From NCBI RefSeq assembly GCF_000315625.1, contig NW_005434517.1, forward strand, positions 42,052-106,051: 64,000 bases of DNA, given 5' to 3'. Of this stretch, positions 2,699-54,327 are shown one piece after another. Each line of letters opens with the position of its first letter. Within the stretch, counting starts at the first letter, position 1. A model generated the notes under the pieces. The model was not told the origin of the DNA, did not search any database, and saw nothing but the letters and a program-made list of their open reading frames with translations. The position numbers and the translations under genes are program-made. The stretch is from Guillardia theta CCMP2712 (lineage: Eukaryota > Protista > Cryptophyta).

Positions 2699-5342
2699 TC
2701 AAGTCGAGCTGTTGACGACGAAGGTATCTGGGGTGATGTTGAAAAGAACTGACGCTCTCTCTGCCGCTCGATGCATCGTTTCTTTCTCCTCCGATAGAAG
2801 TTTCGCTGCCTCTTTCAGCACATCGAGAGCAAGAGCACATCTGAAACTAAAGTCATACCCACTTCCACTCTCCTTCTCCTCTTCCCCTTCTCCTCGTCTT
2901 CTCCCTCCTCCCTGCACCTCTTTCCCCGTACCTCTCCTTCTTGTCCTTTCCCTCCCCCGTTAGTTGGCAGTAGTCTTCATCTAGCAGATCCTCCTTCTTC
3001 ACTCTCTCCTGGTTCCTGGGCAGGGGGTGACTGGAGTACGAGCAGCACACGCTTCCTACTGCAGCAGGTCGTCGCAGGAGGGATCGCGAATACGGTTGAG
3101 GCACAAGGACTCTCCCGAAGCCTGGAGGCATCCGAACATGAGGAGACAAGGAAGGAAAGCCAAGCGAGGAAGAGAAGAAGGGGAGGAGAAGTAGAAGGGC
3201 CTGCATCAAAGATAGGGAAGCAGAGAGGGGGGGACGAGGGGAGCGAGGAGGGGGGCTGACGCTACCTTGCATTGCCAGAGAAGAGCTTCCTGCCCTTGCA
3301 AGATCCTCCCTAAGTCGCTAGCCAGCACTCGTAGAGCGTTGGGATCAGAGTCCTGGCGACGGAGGGGGTCACAGGGATGAAGAGGAGGCGAGGGAACGCG
3401 GCGGATGAGGAGAGGGAACGTGGTGGAGGAGGAAGGGAACCTGTAACAGCTCCTCCATGTTCAGTCCTGGTACATCACCGTCATCGCAGATCTCCTTGGA
3501 GATCTGTCTCATCGCCTGCATGCCACTGTCAGATGGTGTCCCAACAGCGGCTGCAGGAGGAGAAACGAGAGCAGGGAGAAGTGAGGCGGAGAAATGAAAG
3601 ATTTAGGGCGAAAAGAGCAAGAAAACCGACCTGACGTGCCTTCCGTGCATGGAATTTGTTCTCCTTGTAGGCTTGCTTTGCTTTCACCTGACAAAATTCC
3701 TCAGACATTGACACATCCATCGGCTCCTAGAAACCTTCTCTTCTCTTTCAGCCAACTGCTCCTTCTCCTCCTTCTCCTTCTCCGTGTCCTGGTTGTTGAC
3801 CGGCTGCTCCTGCCCCGACACGTCACACAGCAAGGAGGTGAGATCCGGTACCTTGAGCTTCATCGCTTGTCGCATCGCCTTCTTCCGCTCCTTCTCCAAC
3901 CTGCGCCATCTTGAGATGCCTGTCTCCGCCAAGTTTCGCAGCACTTCTTCATCCTCTCTCTTTCCGCGATCCGAGGGTCATGCGCCTTTGCCATCCGGAC
4001 AAGACTCTGTATGCGATTGGCCTCCTCTATCCTCTTCATCTTGATCTCCTGGAAGAAGATTTCATCTCATTGACGTACCATCATCACTCTTTCCCACCTT
4101 GTCGTGATCCTTGATCATCGCTCTTCGCTCCCACCTATTCTGTGCACTTTCGAGCTTCTCATCAGCCTGGAAGGTGAAATCTCGCCATGTCTGTCGACCG
4201 CATCATCTCCAACACATACGAGTCGCACTGCAAACCTGGAAGTTCTCCCAGAAGTTGTAGAACTTTTCAACCTGCCAACATCGTGATTTCCATATACAAA
4301 CATGCGGCACATGGGCCAGACATCCCTCGCGCTGTATTTATCAGAGCATCAACACATCTCATGATTCTCGCCCCCTCTTACTCTCACATCACACAGCTGT
4401 CAAGAATCACCTCTGCCCATGTTGTGTTCTCGTCTCCAAGGCCTGGCACGTGTGGGTTGGTGGACCATCTAGCGTTCACCTCAAAGTAGTGGGACATAAC
4501 AGGGAAGAACCCTCCCTGCATGCAAGAAGAGGACAAGTCAAGGTAACAACAACATGAATCCCCATATGAGCAATCGGCAGAGAGTGATAGAACCTCGTTG
4601 ATCTCCTCTTCTGTCGGCAAATGATCCGTGCACGTGTCAACGGCATCATAGCCCATGCGCTGACCAGATATCAGTGAAAGTCACGGGCACGAGAGGGGTT
4701 GACCTTGCTCTTGTCGCTGAGAATCTGGTACGCTCTATTGATGCGCTTGTACGCCTCATCTGCAGCCTCCACACTGCCGAGTCCATGCCTGACAACTTTA
4801 TCCGGATGGCACAGCAGCGACGTTCGATGGTAGGCCTTTTTTAGTTCATCTTCTCCTGCTTGCCACCTTCTCTCTCCAAGACCAAGGAGCGAGTAGAGAT
4901 CGTCCTCTCCCGCCAATGCACGCTTCACAGCATCAATCCCATGCAGCCTTCGTTCCCTCCGCTTCGCGTCAGCGTCCTTGGACTCCCCGTCCCCTCCGTC
5001 CCCTTCGTCATCTTTCTCGCTGTCGAGTTCCGCTCCCAGATGTCTCATCCTCCTCTCCTCGTAAGACCTTCCAGCATGTTCATAGCTCTCTCTCCTGATG
5101 GGGGCTGCTATAGATCCTACGACCTCATTCTGCAAACCCCTCGAGACGGGGAGGGTAACAACACGAAAGGGACTTGTTCCACTTGCATCGTCATGCGACT
5201 GTCTCAACCCTCTTGGCACAACACCAGCATGGGCGAGGCATCCTGCTCGTCCAGCTCCTCGCAGCCCTCCTCTTTCTTCTCCCGCCCATGCCGTCAGCAT
5301 CAGCGCCAACCACGTCGTTACCCGCCATGCCCATGCGACCAT
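2699..5342 (-). CDS. DNAJC2: Zuotin/DNAJC2 (MPP11)-like ribosome-associated J-domain protein with a hydrophobic N-terminal leader, multi-exon
   Basis: J-domain with HPD motif (DLYSLLGLGERRWQAGEDELKKAYHRTSLLCHPDK). Zuotin-homology segments FFPVMSHYFEVNARWS..PGLGDEN, VEKFYNFWENFQTWRDF and RIQSLVRMAKAHDPRI. No SANT domains recognised. Confidence 0.85.
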
Positions 5343-22586: not shown

Positions 22587-24366
22587 TCATGTTTTGTGCT
22601 TGTCTTCAGCATGGTCATGAGGGAGAAAGTGATTCCTCATCAGCTCCTCAAACTCATGGTAATCGATCATCCCGTTCTTGTCCAGGTCCGCCAGCTCCAT
22701 CATCGAGTCGATCTCCTCATCGCTCACCCCGATCTGAAGTTTCTGCAAGGCATGGTGGAGCTCCAAAGAGCTGATGTGCCCCGTACGTGCCTGGTCGAAG
22801 TAGTTGAACGTGTCCCTGAGATTCTTCGATAGCGCCTCGCTCCTGGCGCTGGGGGAGGGCCATGGCGGGCCCATCATAATGCAGAACTCGTCAAACTCGA
22901 CTGAGCCTGTCTTATCGATGTCGAACTTCTTGATCATGTCTTCGACCACCTCGTCCGAGAGGTTCGCTCCCAGGCCCTTGAAGGCGGACTGGATGTCCCG
23001 GATGTTGATGTGGCCGGTCTTAGTGTGGTCCAGGGTGTTGAACGCCTCCCGTAGCTCCTCTAGCCACTCTGGATCCGACTTGACCTGGTGCAGGATGTTC
23101 TGCTGCAGGGCCCTGTCAGGAGGAGGGGAGGCCAGCGGGCGGACGAGGTGGTTGAGGGCGCTGACGGTGATGAAAGCTCCTTTGAGCTTCCTGGCAACAT
23201 TCCAGATCTTGAGCTGCTTCTGCGTCTCTGCCAGGGTGACGCTGGAGAGTTGGCCCTTGAGGTACTTGGTAAGCCAAGGATGAGCCAAGCATTCGGTAGG
23301 GGTGTATCGCTGGTATCTGTTCACTTGCATCATGTGCTGAACCAGGTCCTGCCAAGGCCATCACAAGCTTTCAGGTCAGAACACAGGACGTGGAGATGAA
23401 CGAGGAAAGTGTTGGGATTTCTCTAGACTCGCGGTGCATGAACAACACGGATAAACAGATGCGGAGTGAAGGCAAGTGGGATGATGCTGCAGCAGCAGCA
23501 GGCAAACAGTGAAGAGCTAAAGCAGTGAAGAGCTCAACAATTCGTCACCTTTGCCTCTGTAGAGATCTTCTTCCAGTAGGCGTCAGGGAAACCATAGTTT
23601 CCCTTCACTATCCTCCTGACAAGGACCTGCAGAGGAACTCCTTGACCAAAAGGGGGACAACCGCACAGCAGAATGTACAAGATGACCCCAGCGCTCCACA
23701 CATCACACTCAAGGCCGTAGCCCCCAGCAGTGTGATCAGCAGAAATGACTTCTGGCGCAAGGTAGGACGGAGTTCCGCACACTGTCTTCATGATCGCGCC
23801 ATTTTCAAGGTCGACGATTGCGCCCAATCCGAAGTCAGCGATCTTGACCGGAGAGTCAGGGCTCTTGGAGGCATACAGGATATTCTCTGGCAGAGGGTTC
23901 AGCTCCTTTGCGGTTTCGCTGCACAAGAGTGATCGGCCCTCACCTGGTTTCAAGTCTCGGTGCGCAATACCGATGCTGTGAAGGTACTCGACCGCCCCGA
24001 TGATCTGGTAGAAGCAATGAGCTGCTTCTGCTTCACTGTAGTGATCTTTCTCCACGATCCTGTCGAAGAGCTCCCCGCCGCTGACGTATTCCATCACTAT
24101 GTAGATCTTGTTGTTGGATTCAAACATTTCATGGAATTCAATGCATTGGGGTGCTTGACTTTCCTCATGATGTCGATTTCTTTCCCGATATTCTCGTAGT
24201 CTTTCTTGCAGCACATCTTATTCAGAACCTTGACTGCAACGATATCACCCGTTTTCTTCTTCTTGGCTCGCTTCACCTTTGCGAATTTTCCTTCCCCGAT
24301 TGTTTCATAGATATCATAATCTTGCTTTATCTTTTCCCGCAAGAACCACAAGGACCAGAACCCCAT
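22587..24366 (-). CDS. Calcium-dependent (CDPK/CaMK-like) Ser/Thr kinase with four EF hands; 1-nt frameshift near 24147
   Basis: IGEGKFAKV, VAVK, HRDLKPEN, DFG, CGTPSYLAPE and DVWSAGVILYILLCG motifs; junction LKIWNVARKLKGAF; EF loops DHTKTGHINIRD, DIDKTGSVEFDE, DQARTGHISSLE, DLDKNGMIDYHE. Confidence 0.9.
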
Positions 24367-33329: not shown

Positions 33330-36300
33330 GATGAGGCGATGAAGTCCTTCCTGATCAGAGCAGAGATCAATGTCGGGTAGAGAGAGGGTAGGAGGAAGAT
33401 CGGTCATGCAAAGAGGTCTGGCAAGAACTGCACCTATAAGTCAAAACTCGTCGCAAAGGATGGAGATTGGCTACAGAGAGGGTCAACGGATAAGATTTGA
33501 GAATTCCAGACGAAAAAGATGCTGATGTGATTGTTTTCATGTTGATATGGGCAAGTGCATGCTGGTACAGCCTTCACAAGACTAATCTTGGTTTTCTCTC
33601 ATTCCAGCAATACAGTTGTCTTACAATGCATTCTTGTTTTGTTATGTTTGAAGAAGCAAGTGTTTTGTTATGAGAATTTGGACCCTGAGCCTGAGAGTGC
33701 AACACTCATTGACTTTCACACAGTTGGAGCAACCTTCGGGCAATATAGGCTCTCTAACTGCGTTTCCGAGACTAAGCGGCAGAGGGGCTTGTTCTTTGAC
33801 GACAGGCGAAAAGCTGACTCATGCAGAGATCTTTCAACTTGGGTGTCAGAACTTTCCATCAGATCTTGTTCACGTGCATCGGGTTGACGCTTCTTGCTCA
33901 TGCTTGGGGAAAGGAGCAGTTGAACATAGAGGGAACCTGGCTTGCAAACATCTGCAATGAGACAAATTTTGCTTTGCCGTTCGTCCTGGGTGAATTTTCT
34001 GCTTGCCTGCAAGAGTCCACGTTCTCAAACATTTCTTGTGTGCAGGCAAAACGTATGAACACCTGCTGGGCCCTGCCGTCCTCGAAGATTCGAATTTGCT
34101 GCTCCGAATGGAGCTTGAGCTCAAGACCTTGTGGGGATCTCCTGTCAAGGTGACTACTCTCATGACCAGAACAATCACATCCAATCATGATGACGTACTC
34201 AACAGGATTCAGTGTACGCGCCGAACAATGATGAGAAGAACAACAGTCTTGATGTCGAGGCTTGCAGATTAATGGCCCTTGAGATCAACTCGAGGGTTGA
34301 CATACGGAAGAAGGTCCGGTGGCAGCAGGTCGCAGCCTGTGAGCTCTGCCGTCCTGATGTCGCGGAATGGATCCGGAAGGAGGCAGGAGAAGCTGTAATT
34401 CTCCGGCATCTGGCGAGCTACGCGGCCCTGTACACCTCCTACTCCATCGATCTCATATGCCATGCGCTCGACGAGGTTGGGCTCCGCAGGTACCTGACGA
34501 CAAGAGAGTCCAATGAGTCTCTGCCGATATCAGGCGCATCTGCCGAGCTGCTGGTGGGTGTGGAGCCGTCGAGGTGCTCGGCAAACTCCTGGCAGCTCTG
34601 CTCAGAATCGGCTGGTCATGGAGGAAAGATACAAGGAGAGGGGAGGAGTGAAAGTTACCAGAAGGAGGTCTACCGGGCCAAGAAGATCTTGCTGAGCGAT
34701 CTCAACACATACCACCGCAAGGTCGCACGTCAGTACGCGACGATTCTTGGGGGGGAGGTGTTGACGGACCACCTGCACGTCCTGGAGGAATTGTTTGAGA
34801 AGGGAGACTCGCCCAGGAATGTTTTCAAGTTCCTCTTGGAGAACTTTGCGAACGTGGTCAAAGACAACACGGCGCAGGCGAGAGAGCGGGCCATGCAGTA
34901 CGTGCACGAGTCGTTCCAGCAGGTGCTGCTGCGGGATGCTGATCCTGACGCCCTCGAAGTCTACTCCGAGCTTCTGGTGCAGGGGACGCACGAGCGAGAG
35001 CTTCAATGCATCCTCAAGCGCTCCGAGGAATTTCGGTCGCTCTGCATTGACGGCAACGCGGTGAAGTGCGACGAGGCGATTCGGCTTGTCTCTCTTCAGT
35101 ATCACGAGGTTCTCAACCGACCGCCTGACCCCCGTGGCCTCTCGCGATATGCTCGCGAGGTAGTAATGGGATACTTGACTGCCGACGGCATCCGCGACGA
35201 CCTGGAGAGCAGCTCTGAGTTCCAAGCAGGACCTGGCATGCTCCGCAGGGTCTCCATGATTGCCAGAAATATCTCCGAGCAACATGAGCGCTGCTTGAAG
35301 ATCTGTTGCCCCTCCCCTTCACCCTCCTCCTCCTCCTCCTCCTCCTCCTCTTCATCCTCTTCATCCTCCTCCTCCTCCTCCTCTTCATCCTCCACCCCAA
35401 GCAAGATCTGTGCCAAGAACTGCAAACACCTAAAGAAGCTGAGCAGAGGCAGGTGCTCGCGAGAGCCCAAGGACCTGATCACGTGGGTCGAGTCCGTCCT
35501 ATGGGGGAAGCGACGGCTGCACAACTTCTTCAAGGCAGACTTGAGCAACCTGACGAGGTATCAGGTCTCGTCCAGGCTCGTCGTTCGCAAGTTTCTCGAT
35601 GTGTTGGGGCGATACCCTGACATGCCCGCCATGCTCAACTTTATCCCCAAAGTCGCCAGGGGTGAGATGAACGTGACGGACCTGACGAGCACCTTGGAGG
35701 CGAGCGACGAGAGGTCTCAGAAGTGGATCCAGCCGAGGCAACCGAAGCAGCTCGGCGAGCTGATCAAAAGAGCTGAGATGATCGCTGGGCTCCTAGTGGA
35801 GAACGGGATCGAGCTCACGGACGTAGCGCACTGTTTCACGATCGAGGAGGACGGGGCTGAGAGAAAGGTGACCATGAATGTTGTCCCGTCCAAGTCCTCC
35901 TGCAGGAAGGTCGGCAAGGTGCTTTGGAGCCTCCAGACTCTGTGGAACGCCAAGGGTCCGGTGCTGGGGAAGAAGGATGCTCCTGAGATTGACAAGCTCA
36001 GCCCCATCGCTGTCTTGCTGCAAGAAGATGACAAGGACCTATGGAAGATGATTGAAAGCCTCGGCAGCATTGCCGGCATCCAGCACTCAGTCGTCATCGT
36101 TTTCTCGCTGGGGTATGTCAGCACTGACTCTCTCGACAAAATGAAGGGTATTGACTTCGCCCGAATCCGAATTCTATTCCACCCGACCCGACAAGATCTG
36201 ATCCTGCAAGACCCCGACGTGGCTCAGAAGGTGACAGGCCTGCTGGACTCCTGCTGCTGCCGTTTGCTGACTCGCCCGTTTCCAGCTGCACTGGAGCTGG

Positions 36301-37234
36301 CTGCAGGAGATGCTCTTCGAGAACATCTCAGAGACAAGGAGCTGGACGGGGGACGTGGTTACCGTCTTCGGGGTGAAGGCGCTGACCTCCGACTTCCTCC
36401 GCATCCTCGAGGCAGCGAGAGTCTTCCAAAAGACCTTCTGCCCCACCTGCTGGAGCATCGCCATGGACGCGGGATGTGACGAGCGGCTGTCGACCGAGGA
36501 TGAGGACAACATGATCTGCGTCAACCATGGCAAGCTCGGCTCAACCATCGCCTTCAACTCCAGCATGTGAGCTTTTTGTGCTGAAGGCTGTCTCTTGCTC
36601 TTCCTGCCTTGCTCCTCGCTCGCTCTCCTGGCCACTTGCTCGCCGACCCTCACGCGTCTCAGGTACGAGAAGATCAGCAGGGAGAAGCTAGAGCTCATTC
36701 CGACCTCGTGGAACTTTTCCCTCTACTACCTGATGCAGGTCGACACGCGGCCCGCAATCAGATGTCACTGACATGAACTTGTCAAGTTGGACAAGTTGAG
36801 CTCCAAATCCATCGGACCTGCAGTACCAAGAGTGCATGACATCTCCTGCTTGAAAGGTTTAGAGCTGAACCCTTCATCCTCCTCTGTCTCCTCTCTGTCT
36901 CCTCTCTGTCTCCTTCTCTTCCCCTTCCCCCATGCTTCTCTTCCTCGTTCTCCCCGCCTCTTTCTCTCACCCTTCCTCACCCTTTCGCCCCCTCGTTAAT
37001 CCTTGATCACCTTCATTCTTCTTCAATCCATTTTCCTGTCTCGTGTCATCTGTCCTGCTGTCCTCCTCTCCTCTCCCTTTTCTCTCTCCTCTTCCTCCTC
37101 TCCCTCTTCCTCTTCCTCGCTCACTTGACATCTCAGACATTACCGACTATCTTGAGCTGCACCTGCAGTACTTCAAGCTTGGTTTCCATACCAGTCGTTT
37201 CGACGCCAATGCATTATGGAGAGGAGGAGAATAG
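33330..37234 (+). CDS. Large multi-exon protein with DUF4214-like helical repeats and a C-terminal glycosyltransferase-like (MGAT2/GT-A-like) region; start uncertain
   Basis: 755-aa exon. Repeats FQQVLLRDADPDALEVYS, YHEVLNRPPDPRGLSRYA and FLDVLGRYPDMPAMLNFI, each followed by L..S.E(F). C-terminal MIESLGSIAGIQHSVVIVFS...LHWSWLQEMLF. Confidence 0.6.
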
Positions 37235-48213: not shown

Positions 48214-50237
48214 TCACAATAAATCATCAGCTACCTCTTTTTGTAGATGCTGGTCACGCTCTAATCTCAATCTTGTTGGAATCCTTCCGCTCCTCCAGTA
48301 CAAGCGCTTCACCGCTCTCAAGGATCTCTCACGGTCGACTTTTGTCTGGGCATGAAATATCGCTAGCCGTCCTTTGAGATGGGTCACCATCGGCGCCGAA
48401 CCTCATCTATTATCGAATCATATTCACAACTCGAGGACCTAAAAAGGTTTCTTCATCCAGCCCTAAAGCCCTAAGAGTTCTTCCTCTGTCTCACACTTGT
48501 CGTCACTTCTGTTTGTTACTGACCCTTGCTCCACATTCGCTGTGCCCCACGAGTGAGGACTGTTCTGAGCGAGTGTAGGGCGGATCTGACAACGGGAGTT
48601 AAGTCTTTTAGTGATTATACATGTAGCTTGCTGTAAAGAAATCTTTACGATCTCACTCCCAAGTCACCTTGTCGCCAAATCATCTTTTGAAAGCCGATTC
48701 ACTTCTTGCTCGTCATCAGATGCCTCAAAGCGAGGCGAGAAGCTATGGGGCTTCCACAGGCCAGCTCATGAGGAAACAAGAGCTCGACATCGCCTTGCGA
48801 TCTTGCCATTCTCCTGCTGATTCGCTCTCGCTCTCGAGTAAGTAGAACAAGGTCGTCGTCTTTCAACTCCTGGGCAGTGAAGGAGAACACGAAGACTGAT
48901 TTGAGTTGCTGCGTCTGATACGGCAGACTGTTCTCAGATTCAAGCTCCTCAATCTGATCTTCATGCTCGTTCTGAATTGCTGGGCACTCATCGTGTGAAA
49001 CGTCTCGTGGCATCTCTTTGTGTTCTCCTTGCAAGGTCTTCATCGAAACAAGATGAAAGCAGACCAAGGCATATTCGAGAGAGCGTCGCAAACGAGCTTG
49101 CAACAAAATTGTGCTAGCCCTGAATGTCAAGAACTCTCTTCGGTCACGATACATTACGACAGTCTGTGCGATTCTTTCATAGCTGTTGTGACGTACTGTC
49201 ATGTCGGATTGTTCGATGAGCTTAGAATATTCGCGAACAGACCAACTTCTTTGAAAACACGAACACAAACATGCCAGCGCCTCTAATCTCCTCTCCTTTT
49301 GCATCTGAACACAAATTCTTACAAGGCGAGCAGCGATGGTTTCATGAGACTGCAGCAGTCTACACCAATGTTTCCTTGCGTTCCGCGACACCAGATAAGG
49401 TCCCAAGATCTGCATTGCGTTGAACTCCGAGCGCTGCTTGAGCATCATCATATAACGTGAGATGATCGAATGGGAGGAACAGATTTGTTGGATAGAAGCG
49501 CACCCTCTCCTGCGTATTCGACTCTGAAGCTCGGTGCTGGCTGCTCTCAGCTTTCTGTACCTCCTCACTTCAACAAACGTCCGCAGCCAGCGAGGCAGAT
49601 CTTGTCGCATGCTACTCCATTCCTTCTGCAAGCGACGTCGGAGGTATCCCTGCATGCAAGAGGCCGCACAATCCTTCACCTTGTGCTGCGTCGCCGCATC
49701 AAAACTGATCATCGCCAAGAAGCGACGAACGTGTCTCTGTGCAACCTTTGCTGCCTCTACCTGTATGGATAGCGCTCTTTGTCGCTTGTCCGTCTTCGCT
49801 CTCTGTTGCTTCATCCGATCATGCCTTATCCATCGGCACTCTTCTCTTCCGAGCATGCCTCTATACGTCCTTTGTACATCCAATGCTGCTTTTCGCACTC
49901 TCGCCTTTCCCCAGGAATCTGCCAACGACCTCAACCACAGATCAAGTTTGCTCCTCTGCCTTCCCCTGCTTTGCTGTATCCTTGCTGCCCGAGCAAAGTG
50001 CGATCGAGCTCCACACAGGTTGTCCGACTGCCTTGCGCGTATTCCGCTTTTGAGGAGGGCGATGACTCGTTCGCTGTTGGAGTCTTCACTCTCGTACCCG
50101 TCAGACAGCAAGTCTGTGGGCTCTCTCGCTGCTTCCAGACTACTCATCGCATCCTCCCCTCTCCCTCCACCATCGCCCGGACGCAGACTCGGCCTCTCCC
50201 TCCTCCTCGCGCTCCCCTTGACCCGGGTCAATGCCAT
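48214..50237 (-). CDS. IQ calmodulin-binding repeat protein
   Basis: Multiple IQ motifs: AALDVQRTYRGMLGR, AAKVAQRHVRRFLA, AASCMQGYLRRRLQ, ASTELQSRIRRR, STILLQARLRR. Small terminal exons run to about 48214 (approximate). Confidence 0.75.
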
Positions 50238-50343
50238 GTTCCAACGGCTTGTGCAGGTTGAGCTAAATTGTTTAGTTATTTTTTATGACAGAAACATTGA
50301 GCTAGGTGCAGTATTAGTAAACCTGTTGAAAGTTTGTGGCCGC

Positions 50344-53300
50344 ATGTCGTCGCAAGGGAGGGAGGGGAAGGCGCCAGGCAGCATGCTGCTGCTGCTGCTG
50401 CTGTCCTGCTCCGCTCCTCCTGCTCCCTTCGTGACCTCAGCATCTAGTGGACTGAGATTTGTCTCCTCCTCCTCCTCCCTTCATCTCCTTCCTGCAGTGT
50501 TGAAGCATACTGGTCGCATCACCCTAGAGCAAACTTTGAGGCTGCGAGGAGGGGACAGCAACGATTGCAATGAGTTTGGCGGGTATCAAGTGCTGAACAA
50601 TGAGATGAGAGAGAGCTTCGATACAGTGATGAAGCGAAGGTTCGTGTTCATGCAGTCATTTCTCATCCATGGAGGTGGGAGCACCTGACGGCGCATGCGC
50701 CTTCTGATGTACATGGCAGGAGTTTCTGGGCTCTTCGATTACGGACCGATAGGTTGCTCCATCAAGAACAACATCGTCGACGCATGGAGAAAGTTCTTTG
50801 TGAGCTCTACCTCTCTGTCAGACAAGTCCGTGACTGTCGATGACGCGAAGGTGGTGAGCGATGGGATGCTCGAGGTCGCGTGTCCGTCAATCACCCCTCA
50901 TCGAGTGCTGGAGGCGTCAGGGCATGTCAAGAGATTCACAGACCTGATGGTTAGAGACGAGACGAGCGGAGAATGTGAGAGGCTGTTCGCATGCGACCCC
51001 ATGTGAACGGGTTGCAGGTTTCCGAGCGGACAAGCTGATCGAAGAGTTCTGCGATGTGGACCTGATGAAAGATGCAAAGCATTCGAATGAAACCAGACGG
51101 TAGATGCCAGGTTGTGTTGAAACATCGAAGTTAACGTGTCTTGGTTGGCAGTGAAATGATGATGAGTTTGAAAGCAAGAGCAGGCAGTATGACGATAGAG
51201 CAAGTTGAGGATGCGATATCAACTTTCAACATCACATCACTCAGCACTGGAGCAAAGCTCTCAAAGGTGAATGTCCTTGCAACTTGCCTCTCTTCTTGAC
51301 ACATTCCAGCCGTTGCCTTTCAATCTCATGTTCAAGAGCACCATCGGACCCTCGTCTGGGTCGTCTGTCTTCCTTCGACCGGAAACCGCACAGGTTGTCC
51401 GATAAGTTGAAATGACTTCGTAATGTCAACGATCAGTGAGCACGGAACTTGTTTCTATGTGACATGATGTTTTGGACACGTATGGTGTTGCAATGATAGT
51501 TCGTCACGACACGCGCTACCTTGAGCGTTGGAAATCTTGTTTTGATTACTAATTCATTCTTCTCTACAGGGAATCTTCACCAACTTCAAGAGACTTCTTG
51601 AGTTCAACGGCGGAAAGCTACCGATGACTATTGCTCAGATCGGAAAATCATTTAGAAACGAGATTGCGCCGAAGCAAGGTCTCGAGAAGAGAGCTACCTT
51701 CGTCTCTTGATTTCGTGATCCAGGGCTGCTAAGACAACGTGAGTTTGAAATGGCTGAGATCGAGCATTTCCTTGCCAACGGAGAAACCGGACATGTCGAG
51801 TTCTGCAAGGTGAGGGAGGCGGAGCACATAGATGGAAGCTGACGGGTAAAGCAGATGGCAGACGTGGAGGTCTGTCTTTTCTCTAGGACGGCGCAGGAGA
51901 GAGGAGAAGCTGAGAGTTGGACTACACTCGGGCAAGCAGTGGAGGATGGAATCATCGTCAACCAGGCATTCTCCTCCTCTTCCTCTTCCTCTTCCTCTTC
52001 CTCTTCCTCTTCCTCTTCCTCCTCATGGCTCTTGCAGGCTCTGGCCTACTTCCTTGGTAAGACGCAAAAGTTTCTCCGGCAATGTGGAATCAAGGCCATT
52101 CGATTCCGGTATGAGCGACAGGGCGTTCTCTGTTGGTCGTGTTTCCGTTGCTTGTGCTTTTCTTTCTTCTCCCTTTCGCTTCATTTCATCTGATCTGTTG
52201 AAATCTTCTCTCCCCTCCTCCCGTCCCTTGGCTCCTGCCCCTCCCTTCCTGTCACTTCCTCCCATTCTCCTCCATTCTTCTCAACTCCCCTCCCGACCCC
52301 TTGCGTTCATTCCGTGACCGTCAGTACTTTCTCGCTTGTTTGACTCTTGACTTGCAACGGTTGTGGACCTGATCTATTGCGTGTCAAACATGACACCTGC
52401 AATCTCTTTGTTTTCTTGCTTGTCAAACTTGACGACTCAAACCTCTACATTCACCTCATTACAGGCAGCACCGGGCAACAGAGATGGCGCATTACGCGCA
52501 AGACTGCTGGGACGCGGAGGTTCTCTGCTCCTACGGCTGGGTGGAGGTAGTGGGGCATGCAGATCGAGCGTGTTTCGACCTCCAGATGCACTCGGAGGCG
52601 ACGGACGTGCCGCTCGTGGCGTGGGAGCAGCACCAGGAACCGCGCGAGAGACGAGTCGTGCAGGCCACGATTGACCGGTGCTGCAACCGCTGGAGGAGGA
52701 GACGGAGGAGGAGGAGGAGGAGGAGGAGGAGGAGGAGGAGGAGGTGGTGGTGGTCATGGTCATGGTAGTTGTGGTGGAGGAGGATGAGGAGGTGTTGGAT
52801 GTGGAGGGATGTTGAAGGGGCGACAATGATAGAGTGAAAGAATAGGGGAAAGGAGGATGAGGAAAACAAAAGGAGAGCGAGTGTCTGACTGCGGTCTAGG
52901 GCTTTGATTGGCAAGGCGTTTCGAGCTCGCAGCAAGCTCGTGGTCGAGGCGCTTGAAAAGTTTGCAGAGAAGGAGGGGGAAGAGGCGCTTGCCTTTCAGA
53001 AGGGGAAGGAGGAAGGAGCACCAGAAGCGCTCAAGTTGCGAGTAGAAGAGGAGGAGCTCGAAATCCCAGCTGCATGCGTTTCCTTCAAAGAGACGATCGT
53101 TCGGTTTACCAGCTCATCCCCTCTTCTTTCATCCCTCCTCTCCTTTCCCCCCCCCCGTCTTCCTCCTCATCACTTCCCTTCAGCCCTTGTTGCTTGTCCC
53201 TGACGAGGCAGGCAGCGAGCATGGAGCCTTCTATTATCCCCGGGTCGTCGAGCCTTCCTTTGGACTTGACCGTTTGTTCTACTGTATACCAGCAAACCTC

Positions 53301-54327
53301 CTTTCTCCTCTCACCTCCCTCCTCCCCTGCTTCCTGCTCCCTGCCCCCTGCTCCTTCCTCTGCTTTTCTTATCTGCGCCCCTTCTTCTCTCCTCCTCTCT
53401 TCCTCTTCTCCTCCTCTCCACTTCTTCTCTACTCCACTTCTTTTCCGTTTCCTCTTTCTCGCCATCTGCTAAGCAGTCTCGTCCTATCCTTGCTCTCCTC
53501 CTCTTTGCGCTCCTCCCATTCTTTATATCCAGGTGTACTGATCGTCGTTCCCTTTCCCTTCAGGCTCCCTTGAGCATGCGTTCTACGTGCGAGGCAACGA
53601 TCATGAGGTCCTTCTGCTTCATCTCCTTCTGCTGCTGCTCCTGCTGCTGCTCCTGCCTGTCAGCTCCTGCTCCTTCCCTTGAACATCCTCGCAGAGAACG
53701 GTGCTGGGTCTTCCTGTCTCCATCGCTCCCTTCCAGTGTTGCATGCTGGGGCTCTCTTCCAACGATCAGCTCATGCCAATAGTGTACGAGATACACGAGG
53801 AGATGAGGAAAATGGTCATACCCTTCCTTCCTACCTTCCTTCTTGCCTTCCTTCCTACCTTCCTTCTTGCCTTCCTTCCTTCCTGCCTTCTCCTACTTGC
53901 TTTTACCTCGTTCACTTTTGCAGGGCGTCAATTGCCGTCTTGATGACTCTGCTGCGAATATCGGCAAGCGATACGCTCGCATGGACGAGATTGGAGTTCC
54001 TTTTGCAGTGACGGTGATAGGAGGAGGAGGGGGAGGGAGTGGAGGAGGAGGAGGAGGGTCAACATGTGACATGGAGCAGGTCGACTTTCAGTCTTGTCAG
54101 GATGGAACTGTCACGGTGAGATGCTCGCTTCATGCCCCACTCCTCTCCCCTCTTCTCCAGCCTCCTTCACTCACCATGAGCAACTTCAGCTACGGGAGCG
54201 CGACAGCATGGAGCAGGTCAGGGTGCCCAAGGAGGAGGTTCCACAGCTTGTCCGCTCGCTGTGTGAGGCTCGAGAGTCTCCCGATGTCAGCTGGGCGGCA
54301 GCTAAGGAGCGGTACCCTAGCGTTTAG
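50344..54327 (+). CDS. GARS: Glycyl-tRNA synthetase (eukaryotic/archaeal homodimeric type) with a bipartite-like leader ending LRLRGG
   Basis: [15 protein letters not shown]|[129 protein letters not shown]. Confidence 0.96.

Follow-up and report, generated by a model that had tools for sequence, protein, structure and literature searches.

The 64,000-nucleotide stretch of the Guillardia theta CCMP2712 genome analysed here (contig NW_005434517.1, hereafter the window) carries a gene for a class II glycyl-tRNA synthetase (GlyRS) whose N-terminal leader ends in LRLRGG, the last six residues of ubiquitin. On balance, we favour the reading that this is a GlyRS of the periplastid compartment (PPC), with a leader ending in a selected mimic of the ubiquitin tail that would be cut after Gly-Gly by a protease specific for such tails. 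The existence of the motif, its position and its recurrence are observed directly, while we infer the cut after Gly-Gly, the kind of enzyme and the compartment of cleavage from the comparisons presented below.

The leader-end motif recurs on unrelated periplastid proteins

An earlier note on this DNA had drawn attention to LRLRGG at the junction between leader and mature enzyme. The motif turned out to be invariant at this junction in divergent GlyRS orthologues and to recur on periplastid proteins whose location is known from fusions to the green fluorescent protein (GFP). The published G. theta sequences were taken from the ASAFind 2.0 supplement (PMC12136025), and include six proteins that GFP fusions had placed in the PPC (Gould et al. 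2006, as given in PMC12136025). All six present xLRGG at the end of the leader. The complete LRLRGG is found in 14-3-3, RRM1, CyP and EF-1alpha, the last with the motif placed directly on GKEK, the native N-terminus, while Ubc8 ends its leader in IPLRGG and ugg-t in MSLRGG. The published sequence of the G. theta periplastid Cdc48 provides a further form, MRLRGG. By chance, LRGG would be expected about 0.0016 times per leader of 60 residues. As judged from these sequences, the motif is not peculiar to GlyRS and is general to many unrelated PPC proteins.

The periplastid ubiquitin precursor of G. theta (gt_155024) begins with a signal peptide and a leader, followed by a divergent ubiquitin-like domain with LRVRGG at its end and by a canonical ubiquitin ending in LRLRGGSY. 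With this precursor as a natural substrate, a ubiquitin-tail protease is implied in the PPC, and the compartment would need such an enzyme anyway to process its own ubiquitin.

In the part of the control file covered here (part 1 of 5, about 23 sequences), stroma-targeted cryptophyte proteins with an aromatic residue (Phe or Tyr) at position +1, the first after the signal-peptide site, had no LRGG in their leaders. The same part held two clear LRGG carriers, both with a non-aromatic +1 residue, namely an FBPase-like protein (LRLRGG) and XP_005842093.1, with eight residues only before LRMRGG; one further RLRGG match was also present. The motif is absent from those G. theta best-BLAST homologues of diatom periplastid proteins that resemble ordinary proteins of the endoplasmic reticulum (ER). 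Within the window, among all RGG matches in the six-frame translation, only the GlyRS leader combines a signal-like start with Leu, Ile, Met or Val before RGG.

Outside cryptophytes, at least five PPC proteins of the diatom Thalassiosira pseudonana display a looser xRGG at the same place: sCdc48 (LSARGG), sCdc48-2 (DIGRGG), Der1-1 (FDLRGG), sSec14 (FQIRGG) and TrxH (LSLRGG). The leader-end motif may extend, in this looser form, to diatoms.

Many leaders, those of published G. theta PPC proteins included, contain no Lys between the signal-peptide site and LRGG. Such Lys-free leaders would be odd if import by the symbiont-derived ERAD-like machinery (SELMA) depends on the attachment of ubiquitin to N-terminal lysines, which has been reported for diatoms.

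Conservation of LRLRGG in GlyRS relatives

We compared the window with relatives found by several routes. A metagenome locus from ENA (L001), 94% identical to the window at the nucleotide level, shows a single and synonymous change in the motif (CTG to CTA) and four replacements in the seven residues just upstream; by itself, this locus is barely informative on conservation of the motif. A more divergent locus (L002) was found by a search with exons 2-3 only, leaving the motif unused, and was the best non-self match. The protein segment encoded by its upstream exon opens with a hydrophobic, signal-like sequence and continues with a basic linker of 15 residues, which bears no relation to that of the window, then LRLRGGD, 17 further residues and the conserved core. 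A 7-mer shared between the window and L002 leaders occurred in a fraction of 8e-5 of 200,000 composition-preserving shuffles.

A profile search then added another six N-terminal fragments, drawn from Logan, ENA/TARA and JGI assemblies. Each of them follows the same layout of a variable linker, LRLRGG, a second variable linker and the core, which is consistent with conservation of the motif although not independent evidence for it. Five of them have a textbook signal peptide, and the called open reading frame (ORF) of the P0020 fragment has none. The signal peptides of the orthologues end in AWA, AHA or AGA.

Across nine sequences, no block of the leader other than LRLRGG is invariant. The linker before it is not conserved in sequence and ranges from 13 (the number ahead of LRLRGG in relatives P0017-P0019) to about 41 residues among orthologues, and the linker after it is equally variable in sequence, with a length of 7-29 residues. 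The residue following Gly-Gly is D, A, Q or S, never P. Most of the GlyRS leaders considered (P0015-P0019 and L002) lack Lys in the segment from the signal peptide to the motif. At the codon level, all six positions of LRLRGG vary synonymously among the window and loci L001-L005 with no amino-acid change, a signature of selection on the peptide. Codon comparison thus shows purifying selection on LRLRGG at the leader/mature junction.

A tree built from 78 core columns was unresolved, with the motif-bearing rows nearest the window, apart from a well-supported cytosolic-type pair; it decides neither for nor against monophyly of the motif-bearing rows. Searches starting from the leader itself returned few sequences. 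An exhaustive representative search with exon 1 gave only the near-identical relative P0001 and one low-complexity match, and a word search with the 384-residue stop-free ORF, restricted to exon 1, gave P0001 only. Two scans of JGI metagenome contigs, with exon 1 and with alignment A2, gave no match that passed tblastn, and their patterns missed L004, a JGI contig that carries the motif.

Architecture and identity of the window leader

The features of the leader and the surrounding gene are collected in Table 1. The translation of the leader given in the earlier note matches 50344-50674 exactly, and the codons place LRLRGG where that note had read it. The hexapeptide occurs once in the six-frame translation of the whole window. 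It lies about 40 residues beyond SCSA and is separated from the core by 17 residues, a spacing that the earlier note had put at about 18. This layout fits the pattern hydrophobic-x-[L/M]-R-G-G, placed 8-60 residues beyond the signal-peptide site and just ahead of the mature domain; EF-1alpha, 14-3-3, RRM1, CyP, Ubc8, ugg-t and Cdc48 show this arrangement too.

Table 1. Features of the GlyRS gene and its leader (positions in the window).
Feature	Position	Strand	Description
Class II (eukaryote-type) glycyl-tRNA synthetase gene	50344..54327	+	17 exons, 725 codons plus stop
Exon 1	50344..50674	+	Leader plus start of conserved GlyRS core; translation and RNA contigs
Signal-peptide-like segment, residues 1-24	50344..50415	+	Charged n-region, MLLLLLL core, SCSA; second ATG at 50383
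Transit-peptide-like stretch, residues 25-64	50416..50535	+	Ser/Thr-rich, net basic, no aromatic +1
LRLRGG, residues 65-70	50536..50553	+	Same as residues 71-76 of ubiquitin; putative site of processing or recognition
Variable acidic linker, residues 71-87	50554..50604	+	Proposed mature N-terminus D71
Conserved GlyRS core start	50605..50674	+	F, V, M, K, R, R invariant in orthologues; AlphaFold helix 86-99
Intron 1	50675..50719	+	45 nucleotides, GT..AG; joint in RNA contigs of runs X1 and X2

Hydropathy reaches its maximum at residues 12-16, and AlphaFold predicts helices at residues 14-20 and 86-99. Residues 25-70, motif included, contain 12 Ser and Thr, five Lys and Arg and one Asp or Glu. 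The +1 residue is non-aromatic throughout: the window gene has P or A there, and its orthologues have E, S, N or R. The assignment of this bipartite-looking leader to the periplastid class is supported by the lack of an aromatic residue after the signal-peptide site.

Three GlyRS genes have been described in G. theta, with glyRS1 cytosolic, glyRS3 plastid and glyRS2 predicted to be dual-targeted to the PPC and the mitochondrion (Gile et al. 2015). The window gene is probably glyRS2. The notion of a periplastid GlyRS, already put forward in the earlier note, is strengthened by the bipartite-looking leader, the non-aromatic +1 residue and the prediction for glyRS2 (Gile et al. 2015).

Beyond the six residues of the tail, resemblance to ubiquitin was not sustained. 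No Pfam family matched exon 1 at E<=1, and a PDB sequence search with 39 leader residues around the motif retrieved no ubiquitin chain even at E<=10. An AlphaFold2 model built with nine sequences displayed the leader as coil without strands (mean predicted local distance difference test, pLDDT, of 56.6), with only the signal-peptide helix and the first GlyRS helix formed. These three results agree with the first impression that no full ubiquitin fold is present. We also rejected a wider ubiquitin homology of the leader, given the same lack of support and the fate of the supposed echoes of ubiquitin further upstream (SLHLL and TGRITLE), which are not conserved: TGRITLE of the window reads AGRINPK in the 94%-identical L001.

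A proposed maturation step in the periplastid compartment

The previous comparisons lead to the hypothesis of a three-part leader. Its first part would be an ER signal peptide, and its second a short basic stretch that evolves fast, is poor in Lys and has a non-aromatic +1 residue, by virtue of which GlyRS should stay in the PPC and not proceed to the stroma. The third part would be the invariant LRLRGG, one case of the hydrophobic-x-[L/M]-R-G-G that ends PPC-resident leaders. Mechanistically, SELMA-dependent passage into the PPC would precede the cut. A deubiquitinase-like protease would subsequently read Leu at P4, Arg at P3 and Gly-Gly at P2-P1 and cut after Gly-Gly, removing the whole leader with anything attached to it, and mature GlyRS would start at Asp71. 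A protease-read processing site is suggested by the boundary position of the motif, by its identity to ubiquitin 71-76 with P4 Leu/Met, P3 Arg and Gly-Gly fixed, and by the lack of Pro after Gly-Gly.

Several points weigh against this proposal. The signal peptide of the window gene is apparently weak (a 7-residue core, with Pro after SCSA), and the GlyRS transcript is traced upstream only as far as 50372. Most deubiquitinases need the ubiquitin fold, which the leader does not have. The profile search behind the six additional fragments is biased towards LRLRGG sequences. Two 'example' PPC proteins, hemE and iddi, considered as such by listing and not by experiment, are without the motif. In the portion of the T. 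pseudonana tables of terminal amine isotopic labelling of substrates (TAILS) covered here, we found no neo-N-termini after the RGG of the five PPC proteins. [quoted passage not shown] Finally, ptDUP, the canonical SELMA deubiquitinase, has been reported to be absent from cryptophytes (2025 phylogeny).

A broader reading, which we put forward tentatively, is that residence in the PPC would be encoded as a ubiquitin tail in cis (a looser RGG in diatoms), with Lys-poor LRGG leaders handled by SELMA/Cdc48 and clipped by an associated protease. One motif could then possibly act as entry ticket, as stand-in for trans-ubiquitination and deubiquitination, and as maturation site. We keep this replacement under consideration because many leaders are Lys-free and cryptophytes are without ptDUP.

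Alternatively, LRLRGG might be a sorting or recognition signal that is not cut; we consider this rather unlikely. Its reader would belong to SELMA or to the PPC, and could be an E3, a cofactor of Cdc48 or a catalytically inactive tail binder. PPC clients would be admitted or retained through the motif, possibly in place of ubiquitination of Lys-poor leaders, and the leader would be removed elsewhere or kept. Some leaders are indeed very short, with 8 residues before the motif in XP_005842093.1, from the part of the control file covered, and 13 in P0017-P0019, so that the motif makes up much of their transit-peptide-like part. The scarcity of Lys in most GlyRS leaders and the unprocessed RGG of PUBL point in the same direction. 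However, the motif always lies at the very end of the leader, in EF-1alpha directly on the native GKEK, a position expected of a cut site and not required of a binding signal. Moreover, changing the +1 residue to Phe reportedly redirects PPC leaders to the stroma, in which case the motif would not be the dominant retention signal.

It is also conceivable, with a lower probability, that the site is cut by a dedicated protease unrelated to ubiquitin, for instance an M16 enzyme similar to the mitochondrial or stromal processing peptidases (MPP/SPP-like) recognising Arg at -3, and that the identity with the ubiquitin tail is convergent. Arg at -2 or -3 is common in the sites of organellar processing peptidases. 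The looser diatom forms (ARGG, GRGG, IRGG) would fit this idea, as Arg-Gly-Gly may be the real core, and so would the mitochondrial component predicted for glyRS2 by Gile et al. On the other hand, the cryptophyte shows essentially no variation from Leu/Met at P4, Arg at P3 and Gly-Gly at P2-P1, with the full six-residue tail as the commonest form. This pattern agrees more closely with the preference of ubiquitin proteases for L73-R74-G75-G76 than with M16 rules. The PPC has, in addition, its own ubiquitin system, including the precursor of LRVRGG-ended ubiquitin-like domain and ubiquitin that needs a ubiquitin-tail protease.

That the motif is coincidental, or a functionless and neutral remnant of a former ubiquitin fusion, is highly improbable: LRLRGG is expected by chance about once or twice per proteome (per-position probability 1.6e-7) and the echoes had hinted at a degraded ubiquitin, but these echoes are not conserved, the motif is invariant in about five lineages whose leaders are otherwise unalignable and whose codons vary synonymously, the unbiased window/L002 pair gives a shuffle p of about 8e-5, and all six experimentally localised PPC proteins carry the motif.

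Relation to known systems

The layout proposed for GlyRS, with a ubiquitin-tail site cut after Gly-Gly, has partial counterparts in several systems. Bipartite PPC leaders of red complex plastids share with it the order of a signal peptide, putative in the window gene, and a basic hydroxylated stretch, as well as the non-aromatic +1 residue, and published work has shown that GFP reaches the PPC behind such leaders from G. theta. The descriptions of these leaders covered by our literature search stop at the +1 rule and general composition, and mention no fixed ubiquitin-tail motif at the C-terminal end.

Ubiquitin fusion precursors (polyubiquitin and ubiquitin-ribosomal protein fusions) and SDE2 are processed by deubiquitinases after LRLRGG or Gly-Gly. 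They resemble the GlyRS leader in presenting the hexapeptide just upstream of a mature protein with no Pro after Gly-Gly. In those precursors, however, the enzymes bind a whole beta-grasp fold, while here there is a six-residue tail only, behind a putative ER signal peptide. Coronavirus PLpro and similar viral papain-like proteases, which are also deubiquitinases, cut polyproteins at LXGG. LxGG is thus recognised without a ubiquitin fold, and a tail-only site can be cut; the viral context is a polyprotein, and the algal counterpart of the enzyme is here a putative one.

T. gondii PUBL is likewise a part of the ubiquitin machinery in a red complex plastid, and the RGG after its leader was considered a deubiquitinase site (PMC5487736). 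That case involves a single protein whose RGG is unprocessed and dispensable, while the motif described here is found on many unrelated PPC proteins. Dual-targeted GlyRS enzymes of chlorarachniophytes and diatoms (Hirakawa 2012; Gile 2015) are of the same family, with N-terminal extensions and possible alternative starts, comparable to the two ATGs of the window gene. Their sorting between plastid and mitochondrion relies on alternative initiation, with no reported ubiquitin-tail motif, and the orthologues of the window gene have no conserved second Met.

Our literature search found no paper tying LRGG or LRLRGG to periplastid leaders or to Guillardia, although an earlier remark in Gould et al. 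2006 (MBE) or Stork et al. 2012 is possible; searching RGG or diglycine together with periplastid returned only the PUBL paper (PMC5487736). The proposed ubiquitin-protease-like step in protein import into complex plastids is apparently undescribed.

The removal of periplastid leaders and their distinction from ordinary secretory proteins are open points of the SELMA model, and current predictors use the +1 residue and weak composition scores. If true, the proposed step would tie the maturation of leaders directly to the ubiquitin machinery behind import and would suggest a replacement for the missing ptDUP in cryptophytes. The motif would also become a cheap and specific marker for nucleus-encoded proteins serving the nucleomorph and periplastid cytoplasm, among them translation factors and aminoacyl-tRNA synthetases. 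Should the broader reading of a tail in cis hold, a simple sequence code would predict the whole PPC and nucleomorph-serving proteome.

The GlyRS gene and its transcript

By sequence, the gene product is a class II GlyRS of the eukaryote/archaeal alpha2 type. Exons 2-3 matched human GlyRS structures (2pme and others) in a PDB sequence search with E=3e-18, and a relative (P0005) carries the name glycyl-tRNA synthetase from its JGI source. Pfam gave no match with single GlyRS exons, which are too short. The spliced ORF encodes 725 amino acids, with the stop at 54325-54327. Its frame combines 15 listed GT..AG joints, which RNA contigs from both X1 and X2 show, and two more joints that were inferred.

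RNA contigs from the two runs contain the leader unspliced from 50372, with 50674 joined to 50720. One of them (X2 record 15) covers 50372-50672 without gaps and runs on into exon 2; because of this span, the leader belongs to the mRNA. The contig start at 50372 falls inside a CTG repeat and is not a mapped 5' end, because DNA contigs break there too. Raw RNA reads (X17), with about 6% of the run sampled, gave almost no depth on the GlyRS gene.

Both in-frame ATGs of the leader noticed earlier (50344 and 50383) are present, and after the second (Met14) the next Met is Met88, at the start of the core. L001 keeps both ATGs and the frame, and loses the in-frame upstream ATG found at 50236 in the window. 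That the leader is untranslated, with a downstream start and a leaderless or purely mitochondrial product, might be imagined from the unmapped 5' end in the CTG repeat and from the second ATG, but it is barely credible: the mRNA holds the leader from at least 50372, L001 preserves both starts, Met88 would be the next start, and signal peptide and motif are conserved as coding sequence in orthologues.

Some further characteristics of the gene were observed. In exon 9, a TCC/TCT repeat (51964-52030) encodes a run of about 19 serines within the GlyRS body and stays exonic in the RNA contigs (joints 51809/51855 and 52108/52465). The segment that follows is the least similar to L001 (86%, vs about 94% elsewhere). 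Several introns are very short (43-52 nucleotides), and some are multiples of three; intron 2, of 51 nucleotides, is in frame and has no stop, and retention of the 66-nucleotide intron at 54014-54079 would add a Gly-rich run to the protein.

Other features of the window

The window has 53% G+C and includes 753 N. Divergent from GlyRS lies a 512-residue ORF (48699-50237, minus strand) with no Pfam family and an RNA contig depth of about 1700. An intergenic region of about 100 bp is common to both genes, and the start codon of this ORF overlaps the in-frame upstream ATG of the GlyRS frame (50236-50238). L001 has a 27-nucleotide insertion before the GlyRS start.

A DnaJ-domain ORF (4674-5342, minus strand; Pfam E=6e-13) begins with a signal-like hydrophobic segment followed by GEERGGLRG. 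We considered this sequence as a leader motif and rejected it, as it is reminiscent of xLRGG but not of the canonical form. The window also encodes an EF-hand protein (22590-23333, minus strand; EF-hand_7, E=2e-32) and, on the plus strand, a 755-residue ORF (34212-36476) with DUF4214 and a weak MGAT2-like match.

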